Shown: positions 1 to 59,244 of the stretch, piece after piece
How the letters are laid out: each line of letters starts with the position of its first letter
Position numbering within the stretch: position 1 is the first letter of the stretch
NCBI RefSeq assembly: GCF_006345805.1
Contig: NC_043011.1
Coordinates: 64,554,464 to 64,618,463, forward strand
Length of the DNA: 64,000 nt
Direction: 5' to 3'
Origin: Octopus sinensis
Taxonomy: Eukaryota
Notes under the pieces: model-generated
What the model saw: the letters and a program-made list of their open reading frames with translations, nothing else
Databases searched by the model: none
What the model was told of the DNA's origin: nothing
Program-made: the position numbers and the translations under genes

Positions 1-1400
1 TAGCCACACACATCGTGACTGACAGTTTCAATAACGTTAACTGGTCAATTACCGAAATATCTAATCTTCACAGAAATATACGAAGACTATTGACAGTGCA
101 TAGAATGTACCACCCTAAGGCAGATACAGAACGACTTTATCTGCCATTAAAAAGAGAGGCCGTGGACTTTTACAACAAGATATAACAATGAAGATTGCTT
201 CAATTGGCCTAGACACCTACCTGAAAATCTGTGAGGACTGGATTTAAAAACTTGTCTCAAAACATGAAAACAAGAACGGATCACTTTCAGTAATAAAACA
301 GGCAAAGGAATATCTAAGTGAATTCCGAATACGACAAATTTCAGAATTAGACATACAAGAAACAAGCACAGAAAAAGCAAAGCGGATGAAAACACGTGCT
401 AAAACTGCGGCCTTAGATATTCTGAATAATATATGGCAAGAAAACCCTCTCTATGGCAAATACTCAAAGAGAGCCTATAATGCAGATGTTGACAAAGCCC
501 TGACCCACCAATGGCTAATGGCCTCTAACTTAAAATCTTAAACAGAAGGGTTATTATAACAGCTAAAGATCAAAGTCTACCAACAAGAAACTACCAGGCC
601 AACATATTAAAGAACGGCAGTAGTCCAACATGTCGTGTATGTCAACAACGGAATGAAACCATTTATCTTGTTGCATCCAAATCCAGTCTTCTAGCGCCTA
701 CAGAGTACCTCAATAGCCATGATAGAGCTGCACAAAATAATCACTGGGTAATTTGCAAGAAACTGGATTTGCCACATGAAAAGAACTGGTAGGAACACAA
801 AACACCCAAGCGCTTGAAAATGACCACATCTCACTCTTCTGGAACTTCACCTTTCAAACTGATAGAAAGATAGATTCAAATAGGCCAGACATCATATTGA
901 AATACTTCAGACAAAGAACAAGCCACCTCATTGATATTACTGTCCCAATCGATATAACCGTATCTGTCAAGACCTACCAAAACTGAGCAAATATAAAGAA
1001 CTTGATATAGAAATCAGCAAAATGTGGAACCTGAAGACTAGAACAACACCTGTTGTCATAGGTGCCCTGGGAATGATAGCAAAAGGGGCTGATTGCTACC
1101 TAACACAGATACCAGGAAACCCCAAAATGGCAGAAATTCAAAAGATAGTGCTCATGGGAAGTGCTCATATCCTACGCAAAATACTTTCTATGTAATCTCA
1201 AGGTTGAAAACAAACATAATTCTCGGTTTTTTTTTGACATTCACTAGCAAAACACAAAAAAAAATAAAACAAATATATGCCACATTAGGCATAACAACAT
1301 CATGAACTTCCAAGATGTTGTCTCTTGAGTTTTCTGGGTGAGACTTGGAACCACTTGAACAAATATAAAGCAAAAGTCAAACGTAGAATGAAAAATAAAT
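1..1400 (+). mobile_element. R4/Dong-like non-LTR retrotransposon (family 1), decayed 3' part
   Basis: Zinc-knuckle-like CRVCQQRNETI, REL motif RPDIIL..LIDITVP, C-terminal AHILRKILSM*, a 3' UTR and an (AAT)n tail. Contains stops and frameshifts. Confidence 0.9.
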
Positions 1401-1508
1401 TATAATAATAATAATAACGACAATAATAATAAAAAAATAATAATTATAATATTAATAAAAAAAAATAATAATAATAATGATAATAATAATGATGATAATC
1501 ATAAGGAA

Positions 1509-1563
<55 letters not shown>

Positions 1564-1574
1564 TTATGCAAATA

Positions 1575-2400
1575 TAAGAGAGTGTCTACTAAATAGATCC
1601 GCAATGGTCTCAACCACCAAGAATTGTTCCCATGGAGATTTAGCACAACTATGAACGTTAACGAGCAGGAAAAATAAAAATAACAAAAATGTAGATTCAT
1701 TCTAGACATTTCTCTCGCTGTTAATGGATTATGCACTGTTACTTACATAATAGTACTGCAGCTCTTCAGTAGAATTTGTCGTGAATACAATTTACTGAAC
1801 CGCACGCCAGGTTTTGACATAAAGAGAAACACTGACGTGTATCAGTCTATTATATTATGATACGAATGCCCTCGTTATAGAGCGCAAAAAATACCCGGAA
1901 ACAAATACTGCATAAATAATTTACTTCAGTATAATTAAAATGAAAAATAAGAATGAAAAAATTGTATATTAATTTAATAATAACATCAATTTAACACCAA
2001 GTGGTTTAGCGCATAAAAACCGGGGATAATTAAAAATTAATAGACAAATATAAGAGGGTGTCCACTATGTGGTCGCTTTGCGCTAAAGTTAGATCCGCAA
2101 TGGTCTCAACCATCAAGATTTGTTCCCAAGGAGAATTAGCAAATCTATGATCGTAAACGATCAGGACAAATGAAAAATATCAAAAATGTAGATTCATTCT
2201 AGACATTTGTTTCGATGTTAATGGAATATGCAATTTTACTTACATGGTAAAACTGCAGGTCTTCAGTAGAATTTGTCGAAGTGGCTTAGCGAATAAAATC
2301 CTGGGATACAGTAAAAATTAATACACAAATATAAGAATATATTTCTTTACTTTTCTAAAGGTGTACCACTTACTAGCGTTTTTGTATTTTGATTTTTGTT
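1575..2400. repeat. Repeat family H in partial tandem units (related to the 57.5-59.2 kb array)
   Basis: 1590-1790 is repeated at 2090-2278. The head motif aagtgg(t/c)ttagcg recurs at ~1999 and ~2279. Alignable along its length with the reverse complement of the 535-bp unit. Confidence 0.75.
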
Positions 2401-2414
2401 CTTTTTTAGAGATC

Positions 2415-2480
<66 letters not shown>

Positions 2481-2494
2481 GAATTATATAATTA

Positions 2495-3095
<601 letters not shown>

Positions 3096-3171
3096 ATTAA
3101 TAATGAAAATTATAGAAGTGATACTGATATAAGTGAATAATGATTGACAAAAAATGTTCTTCGATTTCAAG

Positions 3172-3271
3172 GTTACGTCGCAGCACATTTCTGCTATGTT
3201 ACAGCGATAACAACATGTCGTGATTCTATGATAAAATATCCTTTAAGAAACCCGGATCTACACTATTGCGA
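3172..3271 (+). CDS. Copy A coding exon 2 (G)YVAAHFCYVTAITTCRDSMIKYPLRNPDLHYC(D)
   Basis: Acceptor ttcttcgatttcaag|GT, donor TGCGA|gtaact, 100 nt and open. Paralog of 33920-34019. Confidence 0.8.
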
Positions 3272-3504
3272 GTAACTATGCTTGTTTTCGACGATTATTT
3301 CTCTTATTTTTCTACATTAATTTATAATTAATAATAATTGAACTTTTCCTGTAGGTTGTAATATTATGCCTTGCTCTTCATATTAATTTGACATAATGTG
3401 TTTGGGTGTGCTTTTGTGCGTATGTGTATATATATATATATATTTATTTATATGTATTTATGTGTGTGTGCGTTTGTGCGTGTATATATATATTCTGATT
3501 TTGA

Positions 3505-3560
3505 TTTTGATTTTTCCAGTTTCAGCTAATGAGCTGTGGCCATGATGGGGCACCGCCATT
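3505..3560 (-). mobile_element. 3' tip of CR1-like LINE (absent from copy B)
   Basis: The reverse complement aatggcggtgccccatcatggccacagctcattagctgaaac matches the 3' end at ~39903-39945. Confidence 0.75.
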
Positions 3561-5410
3561 ATATATATATATATATCTATATATATATATATATATATGT
3601 ATATGAAAATCTTGAATATACATAAGTGAAAAATAAAATAATACTTCAATAATTAAATACTTTAAAATGAAAAAAAACACAAAAGGCTATTGCAAGTTAT
3701 TAAATTGTAATCAAATAAAGAAATGTTTCAAATATAGACAAACTCTTTAAATACTTATATTTAATAAATATACCTGTTTTGTATCTATAAATTTTTATAT
3801 ATGAATCTATAACAAAATTGACTAATATCAAATAATATAATACCTAATTAACTTAAATTTAGTATTACAAATGCATAATCCACCTATATATCAATATATT
3901 ATGTAGCATATTATAATTTATATATATATATATATAAATATAATATCGAGAATAATATGTTTCCTATCAAACCCAAATTAAAGAAAGGTGCTAAAATATT
4001 AGAACCATAGGACAATACACTATGAAAATGTATAATCACAATAACCAGTCCTCTGCCAAACCATTCATTAACAATAACAATAATAAAACTACCAAAGTCG
4101 AAATAATAGCAAGAACTAACTAATATTCATAATCGAACTAAATTACTAAGTTCAACGATTCTGTTAATCTATCTACATTTTCAAATGATAAACTTCTAAT
4201 TAATCAACTCAATCGATTCCATTCATGAAAAATACTATCAAAAATTTGAAATAGTACAATAAACCCAAATCCATTATATAAACTCGCTATTTTAATATCC
4301 ATGTTTAATATCTATAGATTTAATATTTCACACGATAAAATAGTTAATCATATACGTTATATTACAATAAAAACTAGTTTATTTAAAAATAATACTACTT
4401 AATGAAAATATTATCTAATTATTATAAAACATGTATTCTAACAATATTAATTCTCAAATTAAATAATATGTAAAACGTAAAATCTTTTATAACAATTAAA
4501 CATTGGACGTAAAAAAGACTATCAAGAAACTATTAATATATAAAAATATTACATCAAACAATAATAATATCAACAATAATAATAATTTCAAACACACAAC
4601 GGTTCAATATTCAAATGAAATAGAGAAACGATAAAATTCAGACTTAGCTTTTGCGAAGAATGAAGAGTAACTGATTTTTAAAAGAAATAAATAGTTAACG
4701 CGTTTATAAATAATCGCGTAGATACATTGTGCAAAGAAGGTGAAGAAATCCTCAATGAACCTGGCGAAACTTTGCAAAATAAAACATTCCTAAATATCGT
4801 TTATAAAGTTTTTCGCGTGGAATTCAATAAATACTCGATGAACGTGGCGAAATTATTATCAACGAAAAATACAAAAACACGAAAAAACTTAGTCTCATAT
4901 TCTAAATAATTTGAGAAAATCACAACTTATGGAGAAACTAATATAAAGACACCCAAATAAATATAACAAACACCTATTATTATATCAATAACAAAATAAA
5001 CCCCTGTTAAACAATGACCCCCCTAAAAAACACAAATCCAACGTAAAGGAGAAAAAAACATTACTGTGTTAATTTGAGATAATCACTAGATTATAAACGT
5101 AAATAATAATACTTAGCGTCTATAAGAACTCGTGGAGACGTTGCAAGGGAAAATAGAACATAACTATTAATGAAAAAGGCTAAAAGAAAATTATTAATGG
5201 AATACGGGAATTATCTAAACTTCATGAATCAAATAAAATTAATAAAAGTAGTAATAGTAAAATAGTACATGAAGAATTACTTGTTCATCATCACTACACG
5301 GATCCTATAACAAGCCATACCTGATTATAAATATTATTATCATTAAAATTATATTAATTAACATAATAATTAACGTTATTAATATCATTATAAATAATTA
5401 CCATCACTAG

Positions 5411-5460
5411 GTGTATGGAAAACACTGGGCAAGAAACGGACGAAAATTTGAAGAAAGAAG
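5411..5460 (+). mobile_element. Last 50 nt of an R4/Dong-like family 4 3' UTR at a deletion junction
   Basis: ggtgtatggaaaacactgggcaagaaacgg matches 42003-42056 and 45903-45957. Confidence 0.85.
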
Positions 5461-5501
5461 GAAAAATAATAATAATGATGATGATTATAATAATAATAAT
5501 G

Positions 5502-5549
<48 letters not shown>

Positions 5550-5557
5550 GTAATAAA

Positions 5558-5589
<32 letters not shown>

Positions 5590-5697
5590 TAACAATAAAA
5601 ATAATTATAGTAATAATAATAATATTAATAATAACAATAATAGGCAAAATATTAATAATAGTAATAATAATAATAATATTAATAATAAAAAGAATAA

Positions 5698-5728
<31 letters not shown>

Positions 5729-5875
5729 AATAACAATAACAATAACAATAATAATAATATTAACAATAACAATAACAATGATAATAATAATAATAATAAT
5801 AACAATAACAATAGCAATAATAATAATAATAATAACAATAACAATAACAATCACAATAATAATAATAATAATAAC

Positions 5876-5913
<38 letters not shown>

Positions 5914-5996
5914 TGATGATGATGTTGATGATGATGATGATGATGATAATGATAATAATAATAATAATAATGTCAATAATAATAATGGTGATGATG

Positions 5997-6041
<45 letters not shown>

Positions 6042-6076
6042 TTAATAATAATAATTATAATAATAGTAATAATAAT

Positions 6077-6124
<48 letters not shown>

Positions 6125-6133
6125 TATAATAAA

Positions 6134-6204
<71 letters not shown>

Positions 6205-6442
6205 TAATAAAAATAATAATGATAATAATAATAATGATGATGATGATGTTGATGATGATGATGATGATGATAATGATAATAATAATAATAATAATAATGT
6301 CAATAATAATAATGGTGATGATGATAATAATAATAATAATAATAATATTAATAATAATAATAATAATAATATTAATAATAATAATAGTAATAATAATAAT
6401 AATAATATTAATAATAATAATTATAATAATAGTAATAATAAT

Positions 6443-6487
<45 letters not shown>

Positions 6488-6505
6488 TATAATAAAAATA
6501 ATAAC

Positions 6506-6573
<68 letters not shown>

Positions 6574-6595
6574 TAATAAGAAGAAGAATAATATG
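5461..6595. repeat. 1.1-kb (AAT)n-derived tract containing a ~320-bp internal duplication
   Basis: The GAT-rich interruption gatgatgatgttgatgat...gtcaataataataatggtgatg occurs at ~5910-6000 and ~6235-6325. Confidence 0.95.
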
Positions 6596-8855
6596 GTTGA
6601 TATATCTAACAGGAATGCAGAAAAAGGTGGCTGAAAAATTTAACAACATACTGGCAGTGCCACAGATAATGCCTGAATGGCTCACGAAGTGGAAAACCAT
6701 CTTTAATTCCTTAATCCACTGAGAGGGCAAAAACAGAAAAATTAAAAATCCTAACCTGTCTCCCTACAACGTACAAAGCATTCACTGCAGAAATATGACA
6801 AATATTAAACAAGCACCTAGACGATAAAAACCTGTTTCCAGAAGAGCAGAAAATGTGCCGAAACGGCTCATATGGCTGTACAGATCAACTAATGATCAAT
6901 TTAGCCATCAAATAATGATTAATAAAGCCATAACTGAAGACAGCCACAGAAAGAAGAAAGGTCTCAGTATGGCCTGGATTGACTAAAGAAAGGCGTTTGA
7001 TAGGAATCCCCACACATGGATCCTTGAAAATCTACCCTTGAACAAAGGAGCACCAACAATTATAAAATTCATTGGACACTCTATGAATAAATGGGAAACA
7101 GAGCTACGGCTCCAAACAAAAGAGGGACTCATGAAAACCAAAGCCATCCTGATTTGAAGAGGAATATTCCAGGGAGACACGCTCTCTCCACTTCCTTTCT
7201 GCTTGGCACTGTCACCTCTATCTGATATACTAAATAGAACTGGATGTGGATATAAATGTTACGTCAAAACGATCAGCCACCATTTATATATGGATGACCT
7301 AAATCTATACGCTGCAAATGACAAACAGCTGGAAACACTATTAAAGACAGTTCATGGATTTACCAAAGAAATAGATATGAAATTTGGATTAGAAAAATGC
7401 GCCAAAGTAACCATGGAAAGAGGAAAACTAGTTAAGAGTAACAACATCACACTAGATAAAACCAATGAAATAAAAGAATTAGACCAAAGCCAAACTTACA
7501 AATACTTAGGTATCCATGAACTAGATAAGACACAACACACACAAATGAAAGAGAAAATAAAAAAAGAATATCATAGACGAGTTAGATCAATACTAAAAAC
7601 AGAGCTCAATGCTAAAAACAAGATAATAGGTATCAACACTTTAGTCGTCCCAGTTCTGTTACAACGAAAAAATTCTTAACTGTACACTAAATCATCTGAC
7701 CAAAATAGATAGGAAATCAAGAAAAATAATGACAGGATCTAGGATGCATCACACAAAATCTGACATAGAAAGGCTGTTTATACAACGTATAGATTGTGGT
7801 AGAGGCCCGATACAGCTGGAAAACTAATATAAAATAACCACCATAGGACTGCAAAAATATCTACTTCAGACTGCAAAAATACCTACTTCAGAACTGATAC
7901 AAATATCGGCAAAACACGAGCTAAGCAAGAAACTGTTCTCTGCATTTAAGGAAGCTGTCAAACACAAACACGTAATCATACCACCTAACAAATATGAAGA
8001 AGAAGAAGAAGAAGATGAAGAAACAACAAAAGCTATAAAACAAATAAAATCCAAACTAAAACTAAAACAGCAAAGAACCCTGATATATCGATGTCAAGAA
8101 AATATAATTCATGGTAAATTCTGGACTAAACCAAATGCAAAAGCTCAGGACTCAACGCAGAAACAGAGGGATTTTTAATTGCAGCAAAAGACCAAAGCCT
8201 CCCCTCCAGAAATTACCAAACAAATATAATGAAAAGAAATATTACAAGTAACTGCAGAATATGTGGAGATGGACAAGAAACAATAAATCATATTATCTCC
8301 GGCTGCCCAGTCCTGGCTAAGAAGAAATATATTCACAGACATGACAGAATTGGAACCTACATACACTGGAAGCTATGCCAACATTATGGAATAACAACAG
8401 AAAAAAGATGGTATAGGCACACACCAGAAATTCTGAAAGAAAACGAGAAAGCAACCATACTCTGGGATATGCCGATACACACAGATAGAGACATTAAGGC
8501 AAACAGACTAGATATAATTGTCAGAGATCATGAAGAAAAAAATGCTTTCTAATTAATGTATCAATACCAACAGATGACAACGTGTCTCTAAAAGAAATGG
8601 AGAAACTCTCAAAATATAAAGACCTGGAAATAGAGGTAACCAGAATGTGGAATCTAAAAGCAGAAACAATTCCTATCATAGTAGGTGCATTAGGCATGAT
8701 AAAAAAAATGTTCAGACAAATACATAACAAAAATACCAGGACTTACAAACACTTATAACATACATAAATTTGCACTACTAGGCACTGCACACATCCTACG
8801 CAGAATACTTTCCATACAATAACCATCACAGCATCACAACAAATCACAGCACATA
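6596..8855 (+). mobile_element. R4/Dong-like LINE (family 2), 5'-truncated and decayed
   Basis: RT motifs GIFQGDTLSP and HHLYMDDLNLY, CCHC CRICGDGQETINHIISGC, REL NRLDIIVRD. Confidence 0.92.
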
Positions 8856-9219
8856 CTACTACGTCATCATCGACCACCAAATTAAATCAAACCAAGATTG
8901 TCCTTGCAGATATTGAAATCTGACGGAAAGAAAATCGGAAAATATGCTGCCAAGCACTTTTGCCTAGCATGCAAACTATTCCCCGCCCTTCGTAGCAGAA
9001 ATAATATCAGCGATTTATAAAGTTAAAATTTCTTTGATCGACACTGTTAGACTACATAAACAATATCCACAGAATATACAATATTGGCAGCTGTTTTGAA
9101 AAGGTATTGTATATAACATATATTGTGATTTTATATTAAATACGTTAAAAATTATATATGAAATATTTTAGATATATCACATTTTAACTTTATCTGGCAA
9201 TCTGCTATTTTTCTTTTAG

Positions 9220-9401
9220 TCGATTAAAAGCTTTCAAGGATTGTTACAAGAGGAAAGTGTCTTCGTGTGCGTCAAAGAATGAAATATCTCAGAATCAATT
9301 TTGGAATTTATTGCGAGTTAAGGATTCCATCGCTTGTTACCGAGGCAAAGATTCTCAGTGTGTTTCTGCGATCAGACAAATTATTTACAAAAGTTTCTGT
9401 G
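9220..9401 (+). CDS. Copy A coding exon 3 (D)RLKAFKDCYKRKVSSCASKNEISQNQFWNLLRVKDSIACYRGKDSQCVSAIRQIIYKSFC(G)
   Basis: Acceptor tttttcttttag|T, donor TGTG|gtatga, 182 nt and open. All 5 Cys conserved with copy B. Confidence 0.88.
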
Positions 9402-9590
9402 GTATGACATTTTAATTAGTTACAATATAATTTCGAGAAATGTTGTATAAGTTGGAATCTCATGCAGTAATAATAATTGCACTGGGAAAGGCTTCGAGTT
9501 TTCAATAAGTGTAAATATTAGCTGAAAATAAAATCGTATTTAAGAATACTTACGCAGTTAGCCATTAGAATAATCACAGCAACTGAAATT

Positions 9591-10325
9591 ATTATTTTTT
9601 ATTCATTTATTTTACTTTATTTTATTTAGTTTCAGCTCACGAGCTTTGGCCATGCTGGTGCACCGCCATTTGGTGTTGCTACATGATTTTACTTCATTAA
9701 TGCTTTTTGCAAATGCTATCCGGTGCATGTGAAAGTTCGATGCATCTGCCCTCATCTGCACCTCCTGCAATGAAGTTGGTTCATCTGGGACACCTGACAA
9801 GAAGAGATCCAGTTTAATTTTAAAAACATCTTCTTCCACCCCATGCAGGTCTCGCAGGTTCTTCGGGAGGATATTGAATGGTTGTGGGCCTCTGAAGCCC
9901 AGGCTATCACAGTATCTTGTCCTACATTTTGATGACAAACTTGGAGTCATTGGCAATATGCAATGGCGCCCAGTTCTGGCATTTGCGTAACTCTCGATGC
10001 CAAAGTTTGGGACCAGTCCTTCCAGGATCTTCCAGATGTATATTATGGCATATCTCTCTAGCCTACACTCTTAGGAATAGAGTTGCAATCACTTGAGTCT
10101 TTCCTAATAGCTTATATGCTGCACAGAGGCTATCTTCTTCGTGTAACTTCGTTGGATCGCCTCAAGTTCTGTGATTAAATTGACACTGGATGGTGACCAT
10201 AGCTGAGAGCAATAGTCAAAGTGGCTTGGGACAAGTGTCCTCCGGTCGACCATCATGGTTTCCAGGTCTCTTGTTCTAAAGGTTCTAAGAATCCATCATG
10301 GGCAGCCGCCTACATTTCATTGCCA
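9591..10325 (-). mobile_element. CR1-like LINE 3' fragment inserted in intron 3 of copy A only
   Basis: Reverse-complement match to 39260-39960. The empty site in copy B is at 56221-56226. Confidence 0.9.
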
Positions 10326-10824
10326 TCATCACAGTTTTATAAAGTAATTGTCATTAAGCGATAATATAACAAATTCTCGCATTAGGTTTTTGAGATTTAA
10401 TGGGGCATTGTTTGGAAAGCCAGTCCTCAGCAAATAATCGAAAATTAACTGAAACCCAAACTTTCTATTAAATCTAGCATTTAAATATAGCCCCAATCCT
10501 CCGCATTTAAAGTTCTTGCGTGCTGGTAGGAAGTGATGGAATGCCGCGTCAGCTGATACCCGTGTGTTTCACGTAAGGATTTTATAAATTTTATATCTAT
10601 ATATTTATTTGTTTTTTTTTTGTTTGTCAGTTTCACAACACATCAAATATTTGAGTTTTATGTTGAAACATGAAGAAATTTAAAGATCATTCCACGCAAT
10701 ATAGGATCCAATAAACCTATCTAGAATTAGGTAATATCAGTGAAATATTGCATCGATCTCATTCTAATTGTGTTATATTAAGACTCTGACACCGACTTCC
10801 AAACACATCATGAAGACGTCACAA

Positions 10825-11175
10825 TGACGGTAGAACAATCTAGATTATCAACGTTCATACACCTAAAGAGGTATTCTCTAAGAAATAGTAGTTTATGGTG
10901 AAAATACTCTATCGTAAGACGTAGTGAGGCACTGGTATCACCTTTTCAGGTTTGGTGAGAAATCGGTTGAAGCTACATTGATTCCTGGACGACCATATAC
11001 AACCATAGGTGACGACACCATTTATAAAATGGAAGACACCATTTCTGAAGTATTGGCGACTTAATTCTCGGGAATTCCTCCAAGAAGTGTTCATAAATGT
11101 AAGAATGTAGGATCCATGGACAACTAATCACGTCCATTTGCATTTGCGGAGGGCGCCTGCATGATGGATTTTCCT
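10825..11175 (+). pseudogene. Decayed mariner-type transposase N-terminal (HTH) fragment
   Basis: The frame ...FGEKSVEATLIPGRPYTTIGDDTIYKMEDTI resembles mariner F.SG..S.ED..RSGRP.T..T.E.I..V. Clearer in the paralog at 60597-60950. Confidence 0.6.
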
Positions 11176-11370
11176 GATACTGATATGTGTATATATACAT
11201 ATAGATATATTTACGTACAAACACACACACACATATATATATTCGCTCCGACATTCGAAACTCGATTACTATGATCACATCATTTTTTTATTTTCTCAAA
11301 ATAAAAACATATATATATACGTATATATGTATACACAAACACACATACACACACTCACACACACACACAT

Positions 11371-11419
<49 letters not shown>

Positions 11420-11508
11420 AGTCCTGTGAAACACAAATATCTAACGTATATTTCTACTTTCCCTTAGTTTTATAATAATTTTACACCATATTATTTCTTT
11501 TTCTGCAG

Positions 11509-11552
11509 GACCTCACTGGGATGAAAGTAAGAATCTTCAGAAATACGACTGA
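11509..11552 (+). CDS. Copy A terminal coding exon (G)PHWDESKNLQKYD*
   Basis: Acceptor tatttctttttctgcag|GA, phase match to exon 3, TGA at 11550-11552. AATAAA at ~11815. Confidence 0.85.
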
Positions 11553-11928
11553 GCCACTGTACCTTCAGTTTATGAGTATGGTTTCAATGAATACCATTAG
11601 AGTAACACAGCTGAAATATCACGTGCTTTTCGGTTAATACTGCCTATAATATCACAATGAAGCAGATATGTATCACTTTAATAATCCTCGCACTGGCGAT
11701 TAGAACTTCACCTTTGTAAAAGACTGATGGTAAATATCTTTAAAACGAATCCTAATTAACTGTGCAATATCATGGCAGATCTTAATGAAAATTTGTGAAA
11801 ACGATCCAGTAGGCAATAAAATACGATTTCGTTACTAAAACATTCATATGACTATTATTACATTTTATGTGTTCATACATGATGCAAATCATTGCAAAGT
11901 ACGTGTACAAACACATACACACACACTC

Positions 11929-11984
<56 letters not shown>

Positions 11985-12019
11985 AAGGGTGAAAAGGAAC
12001 ACACGAGTTGATATATATG

Positions 12020-12163
12020 AAAAAACAAGTCAAAAATAGAAAATGCTAAAATAATTTTATAGTGAACATGTCAGTACCGGTTTCGAAAAGGTCTCGAAAT
12101 GACCGAAACCGGTACTGAAATGTTCACTGTAAAATTATTTTAGCATTTTCTATTTTTGACTTG

Positions 12164-12169
<6 letters not shown>
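12020..12169. repeat. Near-perfect hairpin with ~66-bp arms and an 18-nt loop, inside (TA)n
   Basis: 12020-12085 is the reverse complement of 12104-12169 with about 2 mismatches. Absent at the equivalent site in copy B. Confidence 0.92.
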
Positions 12170-12231
<62 letters not shown>

Positions 12232-12439
12232 TTAGGGAGTAAATCGAAACTTACAGAGAAAAATGTGATTTGCCTAATAATGGTTTTATCTCTAATTTAA
12301 TATTATATATATATATTTATATATATAAGATAAAATGAGGCTGCCATGCGTTGTACACCGAATATTATCAAAACAAGTTTAACAGCAACGCCGGATAACA
12401 ATCAATATCCAGAAAAACTAAATTACGAATACTTATTTC

Positions 12440-12630
12440 TTTATTGCCCACAGATACGACAAACAAGGACCCAGGAAGGGATTAAGTCGATTATATAGAT
12501 CCCAGTAATTAACCGGTACTTCTTTATTCGTCCCCGAAATGATGTAGTTCAAAGTCGACTCTGGCGGAATTTCAACTCATAACGTAACATTAGACGTAAT
12601 TCCACTAGGCATAACAAATATTGCCTGAGA
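12440..12630 (-). mobile_element. tRNA-derived SINE (second family), decayed
   Basis: The reverse complement has a B-box-like gagttgaaattcc followed by gtcgactttgaactacatcatttcgggg. Mostly deleted in copy B (~62255-62300). Confidence 0.6.
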
Positions 12631-12800
12631 GTAAACAAAAACGAGACGGAAGAACGAGCGAATTACATTCAGGTTCTGAATATCATTTTCAATTAAGTAG
12701 ATATATTGCAATTACCACAATTATCTACATTAGAAATACTTCTTTTATTTTAACTAATATTCTAACATATATGTATGAACGCACACACATATATAATGCA

Positions 12801-12912
<112 letters not shown>

Positions 12913-13494
12913 TATATGTGTGGGGGGTTGTATGTATATATCTATATATGCGTGTATGTATATGTATATATTATCGTATATATCTGTTTGTGTGTGTGTG
13001 AAATTTGCTGAAGAACAAATGATGAAGACAAGTGTATAGACAGCAGAGAGGTATATTCGTTTTAACTTCGGCAAAGCGAGGAAATCTTTTATGTTTCGAG
13101 CCTACGTTCTTCGAGATAGTAGTTAATCAAATACATCCTCATAGACATACGTCTATAACATTATCTGCAAAAAATTCATGATGCATTTACAATGATTGGA
13201 GAAAGTGTTTTCACATACAAATGAAATACCTTTCAAAATCTGTGAACCGATTGTTAATAACTCCCTATGGGATACTTCATATATATTATTTTATATCCAG
13301 TGAGTATTTGGGGGTTGAGTGTTTTCATTTGTCGAATTTTCGAAAGCACAGATATATTAGGGCTAATACATAATACGGAAATTGTATTTGTAATGATATT
13401 AACCCTAAAGGGCTACGTGTATCTATACCCCAGTGTCAATATCTTAGTATGCGCTGCTCTCTCACAATGATGCCGATGATGATGATTATAAGGA

Positions 13495-13657
13495 AGCAAA
13501 CAAGAAGAAGAAGAAGAAGAAGAAGAAAAAGAAGAAGAAGAAGAAGAAGAATGAGAGGAAGAACAAGAAAAAGAAAAAGAAGAAGAAGAAGAAGAAGAAG
13601 AAAAAGAAGAAGAAGAAGAAGAAGAAGAAGAAGAAGGAGAAGAAGAAGGAGAAGATG
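13495..13657. repeat. (GAA)n microsatellite (paralog at ~63025-63205)
   Basis: Direct inspection. Confidence 0.95.
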
Positions 13658-14015
13658 AAGAATGATAATAATTATATTAAATGGGGATATCACGACCATT
13701 TCGGTCGAAGAAAATTAAGATCTTATGGGAATGTTCAAGAAATTAGAAAAGTTATCTCTTATATATACACAAAAAAAATGGAGAAATACACCTTAATCAA
13801 TAATCAACTACCAGATAAGGTGTATTTCTCCATTTTCTTATTTTGTATTATCAATTTGTGGTAAAACATTTTAACTTTGCCCATATAATACGATAAATGA
13901 ATTAATTGCATCGCAATTGATAACATTTATGTATAAACGTTGTGGGGTGCTTTACTCGCAGTATATTGGATATATGTAATCCCAAGGTGGGTTGCACTGA
14001 CAACTCCTATCTCAA

Positions 14016-14081
<66 letters not shown>

Positions 14082-14103
14082 CATATATATACATATATAA
14101 ATT

Positions 14104-14164
<61 letters not shown>

Positions 14165-14229
14165 AACCAATACATGTGGAAAACTCTCATATTAAGTCAG
14201 AAAATGAAAGCACAAATATAAAAACATAA

Positions 14230-14850
14230 TTATTCCCTCGTCTCCAACAAACCTATTAATGACAAGCTCCAAACTCGTTGTTAAAACCTTGCCCAAAATC
14301 TTATATAATCTGCATTTAGCTGAGTTATAGGGCAAACATTTTCAGTTTTGTACCCCTTGTAAGGGTTTTTCCGTAGCAAAACCACCACAAAACGGCTCAC
14401 AGCACTGTGAATTCCCCCCTTGGCTGACAGTTTTAGTAGACATCGGCCAACAGAATGCTCCGTACCATTCAACTAATTGCCACTGTAATTCCGCACAATT
14501 CTACTTGGTCCTCGTTATTATGAGCTCGTGACAGCTTTTCAAATCCTGACCTGATATTTTGTTTCCACCTATAACCTCTACTATCAAGCGGCATTTGGTC
14601 CATCCCGTTTAAGCATGCGCGCACTAGCTTTGACACAGTAACCTTTGTGATAGTTATTGAAGAATAGGTCAAGGACCAATCTGACCGTTAGTATGTTAAA
14701 CGGTATGCCTTTCCTAAGGGCCACTTCTGGAATCCTAACTAGGTCTACCTCTATCCTACATTTCTCTAATTCTATTTCCTTACTAATACCTACTGCCTTT
14801 ACTGTAATAGACTTCCTCGTGGCTATCTACCAACGAGAGAACCCGTAGAC
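14230..14850 (-). mobile_element. Decayed L1/Tx1-like LINE fragment
   Basis: VVVLLRKNPYKG..ENVCPITQLNADY(K)ILGKVLTTSLELVINRFVGDE resembles the Tx1-type RT segment LL.K....I.N.RPITLLNAD.KIL.KVL..RL. The upstream part is more weakly ORF1-like. Confidence 0.65.
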
Positions 14851-18951: not shown

Positions 18952-20726
18952 TATATATGAAAGAATGTTTGAAAATGCAATTTAAAAGATGTTTATTTAC
19001 TTAACCGGTTACACTCTTTGGTAAAAGATTGTCAAAAGTAACATTGAATATTATGGGTTCAAAAACAGTTTTTTACATGATTGTCACATTGAATATTATG
19101 AATTCAAAAATGTTTTTTTATACATAAATGTCACATTACATGTATAAATATAGTGTTTGGTAACAGAGATATGTTAAGCGCATAAAAAAGTTCAATAGTA
19201 TGATGAGAATATTTGGAAAACTTGGCAGAAAAGAATAAAACAAATATATTATTGGAAATTTGGTTGCGTTAATTATTGGTTGTCGCAAATTGTCACATAA
19301 CATGTATATATATACAGTCTTTGGTAGAAAGGACATGTTAAAGACATAAGGAAGTGTAATAGTTTGGTGAGAAAGCTTGTAATATTGACAGAGAAAATTA
19401 AAATGGATATGTTAGACATCTCAGAATATTTTGAAATGAAGGCGAGAATTTGTTTTTACTGACCTGTTTGTTTTAGGAGAAAAGTTGAATTGAGAGAAAA
19501 AAAGAGGTGTACCCAGTTTGGTTTATGGTTCCCCTTCAAGCATCAAAGATTTTGGGGTTATCGGGAGGTGAGTATGCGGGTGTGAATAGATGTGTCCGTG
19601 TGCCTGCTGGCCAGACGGCGTCTGTTTGTAACATACATATATACACACACACACAACACACACACACACACATAGTATACAAACACACACCACATTCACA
19701 CAACACACACACACAGAACACACACATACACAACGCATCCACATATATAATATACACACACAGCACACACATATAACATGTATTTATATATAATATACAC
19801 ACATATATAACACACATACACACACAACACACACACACACACAACACACGCACACATACATACATAATATAAATATCACACAAATACACCTAGCATATAT
19901 ATGCATACAATACACATACACAGCATGTATATAATACACATACACAATATATGCATGCAATATACATACTCAATACATACATATAATATATATATATATA
20001 GACAATGCATATACATATATACATATATACATATAAATAGTGTTTACATACATATACATAGATATACTACATATACACACAATATATCTATTCACACCCG
20101 CATACTCACCTCCCGATAACCCCAAAATCATTGATGCTTGAAGGGGAACCATAAACCAAACTGTGTACACATCTTTTTTTCTCTCAATTCAACTTTTCTC
20201 CTAAAACAAACAGGTCAGTAAAAACAAATTCTCGCCTTCATTTCAAAATATTCTGAGATGTCTAAAATATCCATTTTAATTTTCTCTGTCAATATTACAA
20301 GCTTTCTCACCAAACTATTACACTTCCTTATGTCTTTAACATGTCCTTTCTACCAAAGACTGTATATATATACATGTAACGTGACAATTTGCGACAACCA
20401 ATAATTAACGCAACCAAATTTCCAATAATATATTTGTTTTATTCTTTTCTGCCAAGTTTTCCAAATATTCTCATCACGCTATTGAACTTTTTTATGCGCT
20501 TAACATATCTCTGTTACCAAACACTATATTTATACATGTAATGTGACATTTATGTATAAAAAAACATTTTTGAATTCATAATATTCAATGTGACAATTAT
20601 GTAAAATACTTTTTTTGAACCCATAATATTCAATGTTACTTTTGACAATCTTTTACCAAAGAGTGAAACCGGTTAAGTAAATAAACATCTTTTAAATTGC
20701 ATTTTCAGAACTTCTTTCATATATAT
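18952..20726. mobile_element. Foldback-like element with ~640-bp inverted arms around a CA/TA-rich spacer
   Basis: 18952-19591 is the reverse complement of 20086-20726 at high identity, with TA dinucleotide runs at both ends. No coding capacity seen. Confidence 0.8.
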
Positions 20727-27527: not shown

Positions 27528-27570
27528 ATGAAATATGTTCTACTACTTCTCCTTTTAATTCTCCTGCAAG
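27528..27570 (+). CDS. Copy B coding exon 1: signal peptide of a secreted 8-Cys protein (MKYVLLLLLLILLQ + G)
   Basis: ATG at 27528, basic n-region and Leu-rich h-region, then a canonical donor CAAG|GTAAGT at 27570/27571. The phase 1 end joins exon 33920 to give ...LLQ-G-YVAA. Confidence 0.85.
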
Positions 27571-32854: not shown

Positions 32855-33417
32855 GTCGCGCTTGCGCTAAAAATAGATCCGCAATGGTCTCAAACACCAA
32901 GAATTGTTCACAACGAGAATTAGCACATCTATGAACGTTAGCGAGCGGGACAAATAAAAAATATCAAAAATGTAGATTAATTATAGACATGTCTTTCGCT
33001 GTTAATGGATTATGCAATGTTACTTACATAATAGTACTGCAGCTCTTCAGTAGAATTTGTCGTGAATACAATTTACTGAACCGCACGCCAGGTTTTGACA
33101 TAAAGACAAACACTGACGTGTATCAGTCTATTATATTATGATACGAATGCCCTCGTTATAGAGCGCAAAAAATACCCGGAAACAAATACTGCATAAATAA
33201 TTTACTTCAGTATAATTAAAATGAAAAATAAGAGTGAAAAATGTGTATATTAATTTAATAATAACATCAATTTAACACCAAGTGGTTTAGCGCATAAAAT
33301 CCTGGAATGCAGTAAAAATTAATACACAAACATAAGAATATATTTCTTTCCTTTTCTGAACGTGTACCACTTACTAGCGTTTTTGTTTTTTCATGTTTGT
33401 TCTTCTTTAGAGATTTA

Positions 33418-33845: not shown

Positions 33846-33919
33846 TTAATAATGAAAATTATAGAAGTGATACTGATATAAGTGAATAATGATTGACATA
33901 AATGTTCTTCGATTTGAAG

Positions 33920-34019
33920 GTTATGTCGCAGCACATTTCTGCTATGTTACAGCGGTAACAATATGTCCTGATTCTATGAGCAAATATCCTTTAAGAAACC
34001 CGGATCCCCAATATTGCGA
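33920..34019 (+). CDS. Copy B coding exon 2 (G)YVAAHFCYVTAVTICPDSMSKYPLRNPDPQYC(D)
   Basis: Acceptor ttcttcgatttgaag|GT and donor TGCGA|gtaact. 100 nt, phase 1 to phase 2, open. Same length and frame as paralog 3172-3271. The AAG acceptor is weaker than CAG or TAG. Confidence 0.8.
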
Positions 34020-38609: not shown

Positions 38610-39960
38610 TTCCGACCAGGAAGAAGCTGCTTAACTCAGCTCCTACAACACTATGACTGGGTGCTGAAACTACTGCTCAACCACTCAAATGTAGAAGTGG
38701 TATATCTCGAATTTGCAAAGACCTTTGATAAAGTCGATCAAGGAATGATATGTCACTAACTGCGTGATCTTGGCATAGTTGGAAAATTAGGAGAATGGCT
38801 TCATGACTTTCTGAAGGATAGAAATCAAGTGGTAGGTGCCAATAGGGTCACTTCCATTAACACGCAAATAGTGAGAGGTGTCCGCAGGGCACTGTTTTGG
38901 GACCTCTACTGTTCATAATGGCCCTCTCAGACATGTCCTCAGCCACGCAGAGAGCCACGATCACAAGTTACGCAGATGATACAAACGTTTCACAGGCAAT
39001 ACAGAACCCTGAAGACACTAAGCACCTGCAATGTGAGCTGGACAAAATATACAAGTGGACTGAAAAGAATAGCATGCAGTTCAATGCTGGAAAGTTTCAA
39101 GCTTTATGCTATCAGCATGCAAAACTGAATGCAATACCCAATGAATACACAGGACCGGGAGGGATTGCAATCCCAGAGGCACAATCAGAGCGTGACCTGG
39201 GTATTCACATGAGTGATAACGCAACCATTCATGTACATGTTGCTAAACTGGCAATGAAATGTAGACGGCTGGCCGGATGGATTCTTAGAACCTTTAAAAC
39301 AAGAGAACAAGAAACCATGATGGTCCTGTGGAAGACACTTGTCCTAAGCCACTTTGACTATTGCTCTCAGCTATGGTCACCATCCAGTGTCAAGTTGATC
39401 ACAGAACGTGATGCGATCCAACGAAGCTACACGAAGAAGATAGCCTCTGTTCAGCATATAAGCTACTGGGAAAGACTCAAGAGATTAAAACTCTATTCCC
39501 TGGAGCGTAGGCGAGAAAGATATGCCATAATATATATCTGGAAGATCCTAGAAGGACTTGTCCCAAACTTTGGCATCGAGAGTTACACAAATGCCACAAC
39601 CGGGCGCCACTGCGTATTACCAAGGGCTCCAAATTTGCCATCATGATGTAGGACAAGATACTGTGATAGCCTGGGCTTCCGAGATCCACAGCTCTTCAAT
39701 ATCCTCCCGAAGAACCTGAGGGACCTGCATGGTTTAAATGCGGATGTCTTTAAAGTGAGACTGGATCTCTTCCTGTCAGGTGTCCCGGATGAACCAACTT
39801 CACGGCAGGAGGTGCAGATGAGGGCAGCTGCATCGAACTCCATCATGCACCAAGTGGCAGTTGCTAAATAGCATTCGTGAGGTAAAATCATGTAGCAAAC
39901 CAAATGGCGGTGCCCCAGCATGGCCACGGCTCATGAGCTGAAACTTAAAAAAATCAAAAT
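38610..39960 (+). mobile_element. CR1-like LINE, RT to 3' end
   Basis: ORF 38897-39646 has GPLLF, YADD and LKLYSLERRRERY. 3' end aatggcggtgccccagcatggccacggctcatgagctgaaac. Confidence 0.93.
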
Positions 39961-40495
39961 CAAATCAAATCATATACACAAGCAGCTAAGCGTGGATTCA
40001 CCCGGTTTGTTTGGATGATGTAGCTATGATCGTTTTCGGTTAAGCATAATCTATGACATCCTTACTCAAACTAATCATTTTGGTCCATGTTTTGATTGGA
40101 ATCTCCGAGCGTAAGAAAAATTTCTGACTCTCCCCACCTTATCAAAAACTGCTTCAGGAGTTGTAAGTATGAATTTGTACGTGGTCTTTTTCTGAGAGCT
40201 ATTCTTTTGGACCTCTGAATAATTATTAAAATATTGATTCAATTATGACCATAGAAAGTAATTATACTTTAATCCCTATTTTTGTAAGCAGTTGTATCCC
40301 AAAATTTTATTTCCAGAGAGAATAAGTTGAAGGAAGATGTATGAAATAGACGTGTGTGTGTGTGTATGTATGCATGCGTGCTTGCACAAGTGTATGAGAG
40401 AGAGAGAAGGAGGTGAGAAAGAGTAAATTAGTGAAGGTGTCGTGATGTTTCCCGTCTTTTAAGGTACACTAATAATAATAATAATAATAATAGTG

Positions 40496-41777: not shown

Positions 41778-42056
41778 AAAGGTACTGAAACATATTTGAA
41801 TATGATTCCAGGCCTACCATCCCTACAGGAAGTGCAAAAAATCTTATAAATTGCAACGGCTCATGTAATGAGAAGAGCATTATCGCTGTAAAAACAACAT
41901 CCATTCATGAATGAATTTATATATTAATTTTTAAATATATATTTAATCTGTAAATTTGTGTGTGTAACCTGGGAATGCATACAATGAGCTTCTCTGGCCT
42001 AGGTGTATGGAAAACACTCGGCAAGAAATGGAAGAAAATTTGAAGAAAGAAGGAAA
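41778..42056 (+). mobile_element. R4/Dong-like family 4 3' end
   Basis: GTETYLNMIPGLPSLQEVQK..AHVMRRALSL* followed by UTR and (AAT)n. Confidence 0.85.
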
Positions 42057-42108
42057 AGTAATAATAATGATGATGATAATAATAATAATATTAATAAGAA
42101 TAATAATG

Positions 42109-42144
<36 letters not shown>

Positions 42145-42175
42145 GTAATAATAATAATAATAACAATAAAATAAT

Positions 42176-42211
<36 letters not shown>

Positions 42212-42457
42212 TAAAAAATACTAATAATAGTAAAAGAACAATAAAACTATTAATAATAATAATAATAATAATAATACTAATAAAAATATTAATAATAATA
42301 AAAAAATAATAATAATATTAATAATAGTAATAATAAAAATATAATAATAATATTAATAATAATAATAATAAAAATATTAATAATAGTAATAATAATCAAA
42401 ATAATAATAATAATACTAATAATACTAATAATAATATTAATAGTAAAAATATTAATA

Positions 42458-42527
<70 letters not shown>

Positions 42528-42555
42528 TATTAATAATAGTAATAATAAATTTACC

Positions 42556-45593
<3,038 letters not shown>

Positions 45594-45682: not shown

Positions 45683-47050
45683 AAGGTACTGAAACATATT
45701 TGAATATGATTCCAGGCCTACCATCCCTACAGGAAGTGCAAAAATCTTATTAACTGTAACGGCTCATGTAATGAGAAGAGCATTATCGCTCTAACAACAA
45801 CATCCATCCATGAATTTTTTTATTTATTAATTTTTAAATATATATTTAATCTGAATTTTCGTGTGAAATCTGGGAATACATACGCTGAGCTTCTCTGCTA
45901 TAGGTGCATGGAAAACACTCGGCGAGAAACGGAAGAAAATTTGAAGAAAGAAGGAAAATTAATAATAATGATGATGATGATAATAATAATAATAATAAGA
46001 AGAAGAAGAATAGTAATTATGATAATAATAATAATAATACGGTTCAAATATCTAACAGGAATGCACAAAAAGCTGGCTGAAAACTTTAATAACTTACTGG
46101 CAGAGCCAGTGAAAATGCCTGAATGACTCACGAACGGTAAAACCATCTTAATTCCCAAATCCAATAAGAAAGCAAAACCAGAAAAATTAAAACACCTAAC
46201 CTGTCTCCCTACAATGTACAAAGCATTCACTGCAGTAATATGACGAATATTGAACAAGCACCTGGACGATAAAAATCTGTATCCAGAACAGAAATGTGCC
46301 GCGAATGTTCATATGATTGTAAAGATCAACTAATGACCAATTTAGCCATAACTGAAGGCAGCCATAGAAACAAGAAAGGCTTCAGTATGGCCTGGATTGA
46401 CTACAGAAAGGCGTTTGATAGCATCCCCCACACATGGATCCTCGAAATTCTAGCCATGAACAAAGTTGCACCAAAAATATAAAATACATAGGACACGCTA
46501 TGAATAAATGGCAAACAGTGCTACAGCTCCAAACAAAAGAGGGACTCATGAAAACCAAAACCATCCCCATTAGAAGAGGAATATTCCAGGGAGACACACT
46601 CTCTGCACTCCTTTTCTGCTTGGTACTGTCACCTATATCTGATATGCTAAATAGAACTGGATGCGGATATAAATGTTACGCCAAAACGATCAATCACCAT
46701 CTATGTATGCATAAACTAAAACTATACGCTACAAATGACACAAAGCTGGAAACATTATTAAAGAGATTTCATGGATTGACCAAAGAAATAGATATGAAAT
46801 TTGGATTAGAAAAATGCGCCAAAGTAACACTGAAAAGTGGAAAGCTAGTTACGATTAGCAACATCACACTAGATAAAACCAATGAAATAAGAGAAGTAGA
46901 CCAAAGCCAAATTTAGAAATACTTAAGAATCCATGAACTAGATAAGACAAAACACACAAAAATGTAATAAAAAATAAAAAAAGAATATTATAGACGAGTT
47001 AGATCAATACTAAAATCAGAGCTCAATGCTAAAAACAAGATAATAGGTTT
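45683..47050 (+). mobile_element. Family 4 3' end (45683-45957), (AAT)n, then a family 2 RT fragment (46040-47050)
   Basis: 45620-45985 duplicates 41700-42075. The family 2 truncation point (FKYLTGMHKK) is the same as at 6596. Confidence 0.88.
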
Positions 47051-47083
47051 TAAGACTATTACAATAAAAGTAATGTTATTATT

Positions 47084-49559: not shown

Positions 49560-52500
49560 GGAAACTAAAAGGAAAACTAAATCAGTATACCAAATCGCTT
49601 GTCCTATGGTTAATCTGGAAGCGCGTCCCCCAGGGAAGAGTTAGCCTGGGATCGAAAAGTCATCAACTGGCACAAACTCTTCTCCGAATACGGACATGGA
49701 TGGTCACTTGAACGGGAAATCCCCCAACTCAAGCCCTCCAAGTTCACCACCACAACCACCACAGAAAGAAAAATGTAAGCGGAACAAATGGACCCGAGAA
49801 GAGTATAAAGAAGTAATATACGCTTATTACTATGCATTAGGTAGGCCATCTCAAGAGGGACAGACCGCAGACTCTTACAGTATATGGAGAACACGGAATC
49901 AAGACAGTAGGCCCTATTTGGACGAGAACAAATTAGCAAATGTGAGGAGGGATATCCTTAGAAATAACAGACTCACAGACAGTGAAATAAGCGCGATCAA
50001 GCACGCAACGGAAAATGACATAAATATAAGACACAAAGGAAATGAAGAATCAGATGAACAGTATAGCCCGCCACGAGGCTTAATTGAAAGACTGCCATCT
50101 GACCAAAGTACGCAAAGGCCTGAAGATACAAGAAATTCTATTGTACCTGTTAAAGATAGCCAGGAAAACGAAAAAACAACAGTAACTGAAGATCTCGCAT
50201 ATGCTGAAGAACACAGAGAGTCTATGGCAGAAATGAGGCAGAAAATCCTGAATACGCTTTAAGTTGTAAGACATACAAGTATGAATGATAGAGAACCACT
50301 TCATAAACTCTCAAATACAAACCAAAATAAAAAACAAATCCAAATTGGCAACTATTTAACAAATGAAATAATACGAGAATTAAAACCTGATTTTACTGAG
50401 TTAAATGAAATTATTTACGCTTCCTCTAGGGCAATTGAAACGAGCTGTATGCCCCCGAAAAAACAAAGAAAACAAAACCTGGGAAGAAATCAAACCTGGA
50501 GAAGTAAAATTGAAAAAGAGATTGAATTTATCAGAGGGGAAATATCAATATTAAATTAACTAATATGTGGAAATGATGTAAGATCCAGAACAGGAAGAAG
50601 GATGAAGAGAAAATTTGGCTCCTCACCAAGAGAAGAACTGATATCAATGAAAGAAACGCTGAAACAAAAAGTCCAACCAAAAGCCCAAAGAATACGAAGA
50701 TTTGAGAAAAGAAACAAGTTTTACAAGCAAAATAAGCTGTTCACATACAATGCCAAAAACTTCTACAGAGAACTAGGGAAGGAGAAAGTAACCGTTAAAG
50801 ACCCCCCTCCCATGGAAGAAGTTCAAAACTTTTGGAAAAAGAATTGGAGTGACAAGAAGACGTACAACATAAATGCAGACTGGATTATACAAACTGAAGG
50901 ATCCTACCAAAATTTACAACAACAAGCATGGGAAGACATCACAATAGCAGACCTAAGAAAGGCACTCACGAAGGCCCATAATTGGAAATCCCCCGGTAAA
51001 GATAGGGTGCCGAATTTCTGGCTCGCAACGCTCCCATGCGCACACGGTAAGCTAGTTCAGCTGCTCAATGGAATTGTGAGAGACCCAAAGAAAACACCAG
51101 AATGGTTAGCAAGTGGTATTACTTACCTACTCCCAAAGAATAACGAAACCAACCTTCAAAAAAATATCGGCCTATAACCTGTCTATCCACCACGTATAAA
51201 ATCCTAACATCTATCCTGGCGGAGAAAACATATGCATTCATGGAGAAGAACGATACTTTCCCCATCGAACAAAAAGTGTGCCGCCGAGGCTCTTACGGAT
51301 GCAAAGATCAACTGCTAATCAATCGTATGATCCTTGAGAACTGTCACAAAAAGCGCAGAAATCTCAGCTCCGCATGGATTGACTATAAAAAGGCCTTCGA
51401 CAGTATACCGCATCCATCGATCTTGAGATCGCTGGACATCTTCAAAATTTCCCCTGTGATTTCAAACTTCCTGAAGCACAATATGTCGTTGTGGAATACG
51501 AATCTCCAATTATACCACTCTAATGGAGTACTTGCCTCAGAAAATATAAACATCAACTGTGGAATTTTTCAAGGTGACTCACTTTCACCTTTAATATTCC
51601 GCATAGTACTAATACCCCTTACAAGTGAATTAAACAGAACAGGGTATGGGTATAAAATTGCCAATAAAAAAATAAGCAATCTATTTTATATGGATGATTT
51701 AAAACTTTATGGTAAAGACAATAATGAACTTGAAGGTCTATTGCGCACCGTGAAAGCATTCAGCAATGACATCGGGAAGGAGTTTGGACTTGAGAAGTGT
51801 GCCAAGGCCACTTTCCAGAAAGGGAAAGTGAAGACCACAAATTCAGTGGTGTTAGATGTTGACACAGTCATAAGAGAGCTTGAGCAAGAACAAACATACA
51901 AATATTTAGGGATAAATGAAGGCTCTGGTATTCAGCTTGCAAGCACTAAAGAGAAGATCAGGAAGGAATGTTATAGGAAAGTTCGTGCAGTCCTGAAATC
52001 TGAACTAAATGCACGTAACAAGGTGTTAGCTATAAATTCTTTAGCAGTTCCAGTTGTTACTTATAGCTACAATGTGTTGAACTGGAATATGAGTGAAGTA
52101 AATAATATAGATAGGAAAATACGCAAGCTGCTGAGTTGTAATCGGATGCACCACCTAAAGGCAGACGTAGATCGTCTTTACCTTCCCAGAGCCCAAGGAG
52201 CTCGAACCTGATCAAATTTGAACTAGCTTACAAAACAACCACAATTGGACTGGCCAAATATCTCGAAATATCGAATGACTGGATGCTAAAGCTCGTGGAA
52301 AATCACGAGAGACGAGAGAAGCTTCATTCTATCATAAAGGAAAGCAATAAATTTTCTATTGATCTCGTGCAGGATACCCAAACTGAACAACCCGAGGGAA
52401 GTACGGCAACTATTGTTGCAAAGAAGGGGAAAATGATGGCAACGAAAAAAGCACACCAGCATTTGGCTGATAGGTGGGAGGAGAAAACTTTGCATGGCAA

Positions 52501-53405: not shown

Positions 53406-53444
53406 AAAAAAAATAATAATAATAATGATAATTATAATAATATA

Positions 53445-59165: not shown

Positions 59166-59244
<79 letters not shown>

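Follow-up and report, generated by a model that had tools for sequence, protein, structure and literature searches.

Rapid amino-acid replacement on a fixed cysteine scaffold in a tandem gene pair of Octopus sinensis

Two tandem copies of an Octopus sinensis gene, predicted to encode a small secreted protein, differ by amino-acid replacement at 27 of 107 codons on a cysteine scaffold that is identical in both. The copies, here called A and B, lie in a 64,000-nucleotide (nt) window, that is, the whole stretch of DNA analyzed (NCBI RefSeq assembly GCF_006345805.1, contig NC_043011.1, positions 64,554,464 to 64,618,463 of the forward strand). The window is AT-rich, transposon-dense animal DNA, and scans of it for Rfam families and tRNA genes gave no matches. 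All features of the two copies described below are on the forward strand, and coordinates are those of the window.

Replacement may run moderately above the neutral rate, which would reflect diversifying selection on the surface of the protein; we give this reading a probability of roughly 0.45. Under it, purifying selection would hold the cysteines, the tryptophans and the hydrophobic core in both copies, and exposed, mostly charged or polar positions would be replaced at a rate equal to or above the local neutral rate. The protein would then be an extracellular ligand or a binding protein whose surface is subject to diversifying selection. The replacements may thus be adaptive; positive selection is plausible but unproven.

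Replacement and synonymous change in exons 2 to 4

Copy A exon 1 falls outside the window, so the comparison of the copies is limited to exons 2 to 4, which in either copy comprise 107 codons and a TGA stop. After exon boundaries had been corrected by one base relative to the first reading, exon 2 (100 nt; A 3172-3271, B 33920-34019) was found to differ between the copies at 9 positions, exon 3 (182 nt; A 9220-9401, B 55854-56035) at 21, and the coding part of exon 4 (44 nt; A 11509-11552, B 61266-61309) at 6. These changes fall 10, 17 and 9 times on codon positions 1, 2 and 3, respectively. The replacements number 6, 16 and 5 in exons 2, 3 and 4, and synonymous-only changes are confined to three codons (Y1, G75 and S82), two of them in exon 3. 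The first-pass annotation of this DNA had arrived at the same replacement and synonymous-only counts and at the same 21 differences in exon 3.

Everything that would define the scaffold is the same in the two copies. On re-checking, all eight cysteines, both tryptophans, the AG/GT splice sites, the exon lengths and the TGA stop (11550-11552 in A) proved identical, as had been claimed. Five stretches carry no change between the copies, the longest being NQFWNLLRVKDSIAC. The replacements are distributed unevenly with respect to residue type: positions hydrophobic in both copies make up 5 of the 27 replaced sites versus 40 of the 80 other sites (p=0.006), and 13 of the 27 replacements alter charge. 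Copy A carries a net charge of +8 and copy B one of +4, and the individual charge-lowering changes listed earlier for B are present. Such a pattern is the one expected of a folded protein with a probably conserved core and a variable surface.

The ratio of 27 replacement to 3 synonymous-only codons had been offered as evidence of selection. By itself it is no such signature, because about 80% of the sites are non-synonymous and codons hit twice hide synonymous steps. Thirty-six random substitutions drawn from the intron mutation spectrum yielded 26.1 +/- 2.4 replacement codons and 6.2 +/- 2.3 synonymous-only codons, and three or fewer synonymous-only codons arose with a probability of 0.12. 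Thus, the observed ratio lies near a neutral expectation of about 26:6 and does not speak for selection.

The ratio of non-synonymous to synonymous substitution rates (dN/dS, or omega) is near 1 overall. With 64 synonymous and 257 non-synonymous sites, carrying 6.5 and 29.5 differences, respectively, dN/dS was 1.15 by NG86, 1.20 by maximum likelihood (Biopython), 1.27 by YN00, 1.55 by LWL85 and 1.2-1.4 under a GY94-type pairwise codon model. Under the latter model, a likelihood-ratio test against an omega of 1 gave a 2dlnL of 0.2-0.65 (p=0.42-0.68). The profile interval for omega spans about 0.5-3.5, values of 0.3 or less are rejected, and Fisher's test on sites gave p=0.39. Ordinary purifying selection thus clearly does not describe this pair, with an omega above 1 unproven. 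The first-pass annotation had spoken of a strong positive-selection signature; its fast replacement on a fixed scaffold stands, whereas a dN/dS significantly above 1 (1.15-1.55, p=0.42-0.68) does not.

Exon and non-coding divergence

The two copies were aligned colinearly over their full length with simple repeats masked. Divergence was 8.96% (685/7644) in non-coding DNA overall, 7.8% (364/4653) in non-coding DNA outside transposons, and 11.0% (36/326) in exons. An expectation corrected for base composition (G+C) amounts to 26.6-30.2 exon differences versus the 36 observed (P=0.05-0.17). Taking CpG into account changed this little: at non-CpG sites, divergence was 10.0% in exons versus 7.2% in non-coding DNA.

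The contrast is sharpest at exon 3, where 21/182 positions (11.5%) differ versus 23/524 (4.4%) in the flanks of its alignment block, a 2.6-fold difference (Fisher p=0.001). The difference between exon 3 and its flanks, +0.071, exceeds that in all 93 overlapping non-coding control windows (maximum, 0.065). Upstream, the low-divergence flank spans 8854-9219, with 13 differences among 327 aligned nt; downstream, it spans 9402-9595, with 9 differences among 188 nt, one more than the approximately 8 counted before. The earlier statement that exons diverge faster than introns thus holds for exon 3 against its flanks; over the whole gene the excess is marginal, at 11.0% versus 7.8-9.0%.

When the scaffold was held fixed and the remainder allowed to change at the intron rate, 16-18 replacements were expected versus the 27 observed (P=0.003-0.017); without conditioning on the scaffold, the excess over the intron rate had P=0.04-0.14. 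The replacement excess over the intron-rate null is suggestive, with the qualification that non-coding divergence is over-dispersed and P values based on introns are therefore optimistic.

Several results weigh against diversifying selection. By no method did omega significantly exceed 1, and dS in the gene itself (about 0.10, on some 6.5 changes) is as high as dN. Taken over the whole gene, the exons stand just modestly above non-coding DNA. Non-coding divergence is itself very patchy, with blocks ranging from 4.4% to 20% (heterogeneity chi-square p=1e-13), and 9% of non-coding windows of 182 nt contain at least 21 differences. The selection tests compare two sequences. The integrity of copy A is seen for exons 2 to 4, its exon 1 being outside the window. 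Finally, the structure model, obtained with AlphaFold from the translation of exon 3 alone, has three helices at a confidence (predicted local distance difference test score, pLDDT, 59.6) too low for a fold search.

Much of this evidence would fit a tentative but serious alternative, in which both genes are functional and no adaptive change has occurred. The surface would be unconstrained (omega of about 1), the disulfide and hydrophobic core conserved, and the excess of exon changes a product of regional rates, CpG sites and noise. An omega of 1.2 is indistinguishable from 1 and even from 0.6, the 27:3 ratio fits the neutral expectation, the exon excess is marginal, and non-coding divergence is strongly over-dispersed. 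In addition, the CpG share is about twice as high in exons as in introns, and divergence at CpG sites is about 18-20%. However, with about 10% of the codons frozen and the rest drifting neutrally, the overall omega should fall below 1 and the replacements should number 16-18 rather than 27, and no control window shows as strong a contrast as exon 3 does with its flanks.

That contrast could also originate in the introns, which we consider possible though on balance unlikely. Patchy gene conversion or conserved intronic regulatory sequence would have lowered divergence in the exon 3 flanks, an explanation compatible either with diversifying selection or with the absence of adaptive change. Gene conversion or intronic constraint could account for the low-divergence flanks as easily as an accelerated exon could. 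At 4.4%, the flanks are well under the non-coding mean of 7.8-9.0%, and other near-identical patches exist, with identical runs of 126, 98 and 89 nt. Yet a conversion tract over 8854-9595 would have homogenized exon 3 as well, and two tracts ending at both exon borders would be contrived, unless selection had removed conversions of the exon.

One of the other patches is a block in intron 1 (A 1737-2018, B approximately 33018-33300), in which 4 of 282 nt differ and the identical runs measure 89 and 126 nt (P=2e-6 at the 7.8% background). It contains no open reading frame (ORF), and its RNA-folding z-score is just -2 on either strand. The block may represent either conserved regulatory sequence or a tract of gene conversion.

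Gene structure, duplication and maintenance of both copies

In copy B the gene has four exons and a predicted precursor of 122 amino acids (aa) with a signal peptide at the N terminus. Since the frame of exon 2 starts 2 nt into the exon, the exon before it must have a phase-1 end. The region upstream of B was scanned for open frames that begin with ATG and run to a phase-1 GT donor, and the best-scoring candidate was a coding part of exon 1 at 27528-27570, whose product is MKYVLLLLLLILLQ, with one further base that opens a Gly codon. Its donor, AAG/GTAAGT, is perfect, and its phase fits exon 2. What it encodes resembles a classic signal peptide, from which the protein would be secreted, with cleavage probably near VAA/HF. 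In copy A, the first 2 nt of exon 2 finish the split codon, and the exon supplies the last residues of the signal peptide together with the first three cysteines; exon 3 encodes the other five cysteines and the invariant stretch named above, which is 15 residues long. An AATAAA polyadenylation signal lies approximately 265 nt past the stop of A (11815-11820) and is kept in B (61571-61576). From exon 2 to the stop, the gene measures 8.4 kb in A and 27.4 kb in B.

The predicted mature protein has about 103 aa, is basic, and follows the framework C-x7-C-x16-C-x8-C-x7-C-x22-C-x7-C-x12-C. Its eight cysteines would suffice for four disulfides, and the structure model points to a putative helical disulfide fold.

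The counterpart of exon 1 in A falls upstream of window base 1, as position 1 of A corresponds to 32132 in B, and no convincing exon 1 shared with B was found in A 1-3171. An unspliced start was also considered in B, where an ATG at 33889 lies 31 nt before exon 2 (33889-33919) and is in frame with it (MIDINVLRFEG-YVAAHF...). In A the matching ATG is out of frame by a 1-nt indel, so the ATG in B is probably unused.

The two copies arose by tandem segmental duplication at the DNA level, not by retrocopying. Copy A of the duplication (1-14373) continues past the window start, and copy B (32132-64000) continues past the window end, its introns enlarged by additional transposon insertions. The two align by blastn in colinear blocks on the same strand, at 78-94% identity per block, introns and flanks included. 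Intron 2 of A contains a fragment of a long interspersed nuclear element (LINE) encoding reverse transcriptase (6514-8856; blastn, Pfam RVT_1), and B has a LINE fragment at the matching position (53444-55348; Pfam RVT_1). This insertion therefore predates the duplication. Colinear homology through introns and flanks, the shared older LINE and the common orientation together identify the event as a tandem segmental duplication. The gene would have been copied within a segment of at least 14 kb, at a spacing of approximately 30 kb.

Both copies appear to be functional, maintained genes, as judged from their intact frames, splice sites, scaffold and polyadenylation signals (for A, in exons 2 to 4). 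Under unconstrained substitution, the probability of acquiring no premature stop while retaining the stop codon is 0.064, that of keeping all eight cysteines is 0.062, and the joint probability of keeping the reading frame, the eight cysteines and both tryptophans is 0.003. Non-coding DNA carries 33 indel events in 4937 nt, a rate at which the 326 exon nt would contain 2.2 indels, and the probability of finding none is 0.11. Together with the avoidance of hydrophobic positions by the replacements, the joint probability bears out the fixed cysteine scaffold described in the first-pass annotation.

These figures make it unlikely that one copy, more probably A, is a young pseudogene that has been drifting and has not yet received a disabling mutation, with most of the differences on a single lineage. 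An omega of about 1 across the gene, the preponderance of changes at second codon positions (17 versus 10 and 9) and the location of A exon 1 outside the window would suit such a history. Against it stand the low joint probability of an intact frame and scaffold, the lack of indels, six pairs of splice dinucleotides and a polyadenylation signal intact in both copies, and the sparing of hydrophobic core positions. It is very improbable that there is no gene at all and that the open frames are chance products of duplicated non-coding DNA, as the lack of homologues in the databases searched might suggest: in either copy, canonical splice sites link three frames in phase; in B these are preceded by an exon that encodes a textbook signal peptide and has a perfect donor; a conserved polyadenylation signal follows, indels are absent, and replacements are placed non-randomly.

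The repeats of the locus are of several kinds. Intron 3 of B, unlike intron 3 of A, contains a tandem array (57589-59169) of 535-bp units that are 99.5% identical to one another. The 535-bp unit is an inverted relative (approximately 67% identity) of an element at 1603-2244, upstream of exon 2, that holds the nearly invariant block of intron 1. Intron 2 of A includes approximately 1.1 kb of an (AAT)n-type microsatellite with GAT runs (5440-6580), which gives rise, in several frames, to spurious ORFs longer than 400 aa. A module composed of (AAT)n and a LINE fragment occurs once in A (5407-8856) and three times in intron 2 of B (41999-45402, 45901-47057 and 53354-55348). The A module resembles a non-syntenic B copy (89.0%) more than it does the syntenic one (85.9%), which suggests internal duplication or conversion within the B intron.

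A long LINE-like element also lies in intron 2 of B (49696-53239), with ORFs of 188, 191, 323 (RVT_1) and 197 aa. Part of the reverse-transcriptase ORF of this element is matched at 92% identity by a protein encoded on a short metagenome contig (L001); the best other hits of a LINE reverse transcriptase were ENA contigs, at 69% identity or less. Introns of both copies contain a short repeat resembling a short interspersed nuclear element (SINE), at 3500-3560, 9610-9670 and 39903-39984, with the core TTTCAGCT.A.GAGCT.TGGCCATG.TGG.GCACCGCCAT. At A 9593-10325 the SINE-like repeat adjoins a transposon fragment that is missing at the matching site in B and was therefore inserted after the duplication. 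Between the gene copies lies a 640-bp inverted repeat (18952-19591 and 20086-20725) whose arms are 97.7% identical and approximately 500 bp apart.

Relatives and analogous systems

Provisionally, the gene appears to be an orphan, with no relatives in the databases searched, which seem to lack the source genome. Pfam gave no real match for the protein, its one hit being a spurious HTH_92 at E=0.18, and a word-index search of 5.8 billion proteins returned no candidates. HMMER, run with an exon 3 profile against 1.84 billion representative proteins, found no real relative; the profile, 60 residues built from two sequences, could detect only fairly close ones. The single HMMER match was a bacterial repeat adhesin (P0001) in which a 14-residue motif was matched six times, and it was rejected as spurious. 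PDB sequences gave chance matches alone (E=0.33). A first scan of metagenome DNA with back-translated conserved motifs found nothing; a second produced at least 120 chance matches in bacterial contigs, none of which tblastn confirmed. A literature search for an octopus cysteine-rich tandem family yielded nothing relevant. The Pfam, PDB, word-index and HMMER searches thus gave no homology to a recognized toxin, immune or gamete-recognition family, and any such role would be suggested purely by analogy.

One analogy is with snake-venom multigene families, three-finger toxins and phospholipase A2 (PLA2) isozymes, for which accelerated evolution of coding regions has been described (PMC2474615, PMC6062510). 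As in those families, the octopus genes are tandem duplicates for small, probably secreted, disulfide-rich proteins in which the cysteine framework is kept, exons have diverged as much as or more than introns, and dN roughly equals or exceeds dS. Unlike those families, with which it shares no sequence or family relationship, the octopus pair has a dN/dS not significantly above 1 and a marginal exon excess, and its predicted fold is probably helical, unlike the three-finger or PLA2 folds.

Mammalian beta-defensins form tandem clusters in which a fast-evolving mature-peptide exon is built on a fixed cysteine scaffold and paralogs shift in net charge. The octopus pair resembles them in its tandem arrangement, its fast divergence on a fixed cysteine scaffold and its shift in net charge. 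Beta-defensins, however, have six cysteines, a beta-sheet and two exons, whereas the octopus gene has eight cysteines, a helical prediction and four exons; no homology between them was detected.

Conotoxin superfamilies combine a conserved signal sequence with a hypervariable mature region on a fixed cysteine framework, and their genes have long introns. The octopus genes share with these and other secreted cysteine-rich peptides of molluscs a predicted signal sequence, a variable mature region, a fixed framework and long introns. In contrast to conotoxins, the predicted mature octopus protein has about 100 aa. To our knowledge, its framework fits no known conotoxin or other molluscan framework.

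Insect odorant-binding proteins and Aplysia attractin are small, secreted, helix-rich proteins with several disulfides, often encoded in tandem and fast-evolving. All these traits may recur in the octopus protein, its helices being those of the structure model, but the number and spacing of its cysteines differ. No match to the Pfam insect odorant-binding family PBP_GOBP was found at E<=10, and the eight cysteines do not follow the six-cysteine spacing of those proteins. Nor does the sequence, which contains neither CC nor CXC, fit the eight-cysteine motif of plant non-specific lipid transfer proteins (C...C...CC...CXC...C...C).

Gene pairs of this kind are common in animal genomes, and the present one carries two lessons: a raw count of 27 replacement to 3 synonymous codons lies near the neutral expectation, and a single intron flank of low divergence can inflate the impression that exons evolve faster than introns. 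The analysis also provides a full gene model with a putative signal-peptide exon and the extent of the duplication. It is a doubtful though tenable proposition that A and B are two members of an undescribed, lineage-restricted family of secreted four-disulfide helical proteins, under true diversifying selection at the surface, in which the exon, since a recent duplication or conversion, has diverged about 2.6 times as fast as its own introns. If so, the family would probably be engaged in a co-evolving extracellular interaction, for instance with a target in prey or predators, in mate recognition or in pathogen recognition. Were diversifying selection confirmed, the pair would represent a compact orphan secreted family in an arms race or a recognition system, in which the division between scaffold and surface could be mapped.

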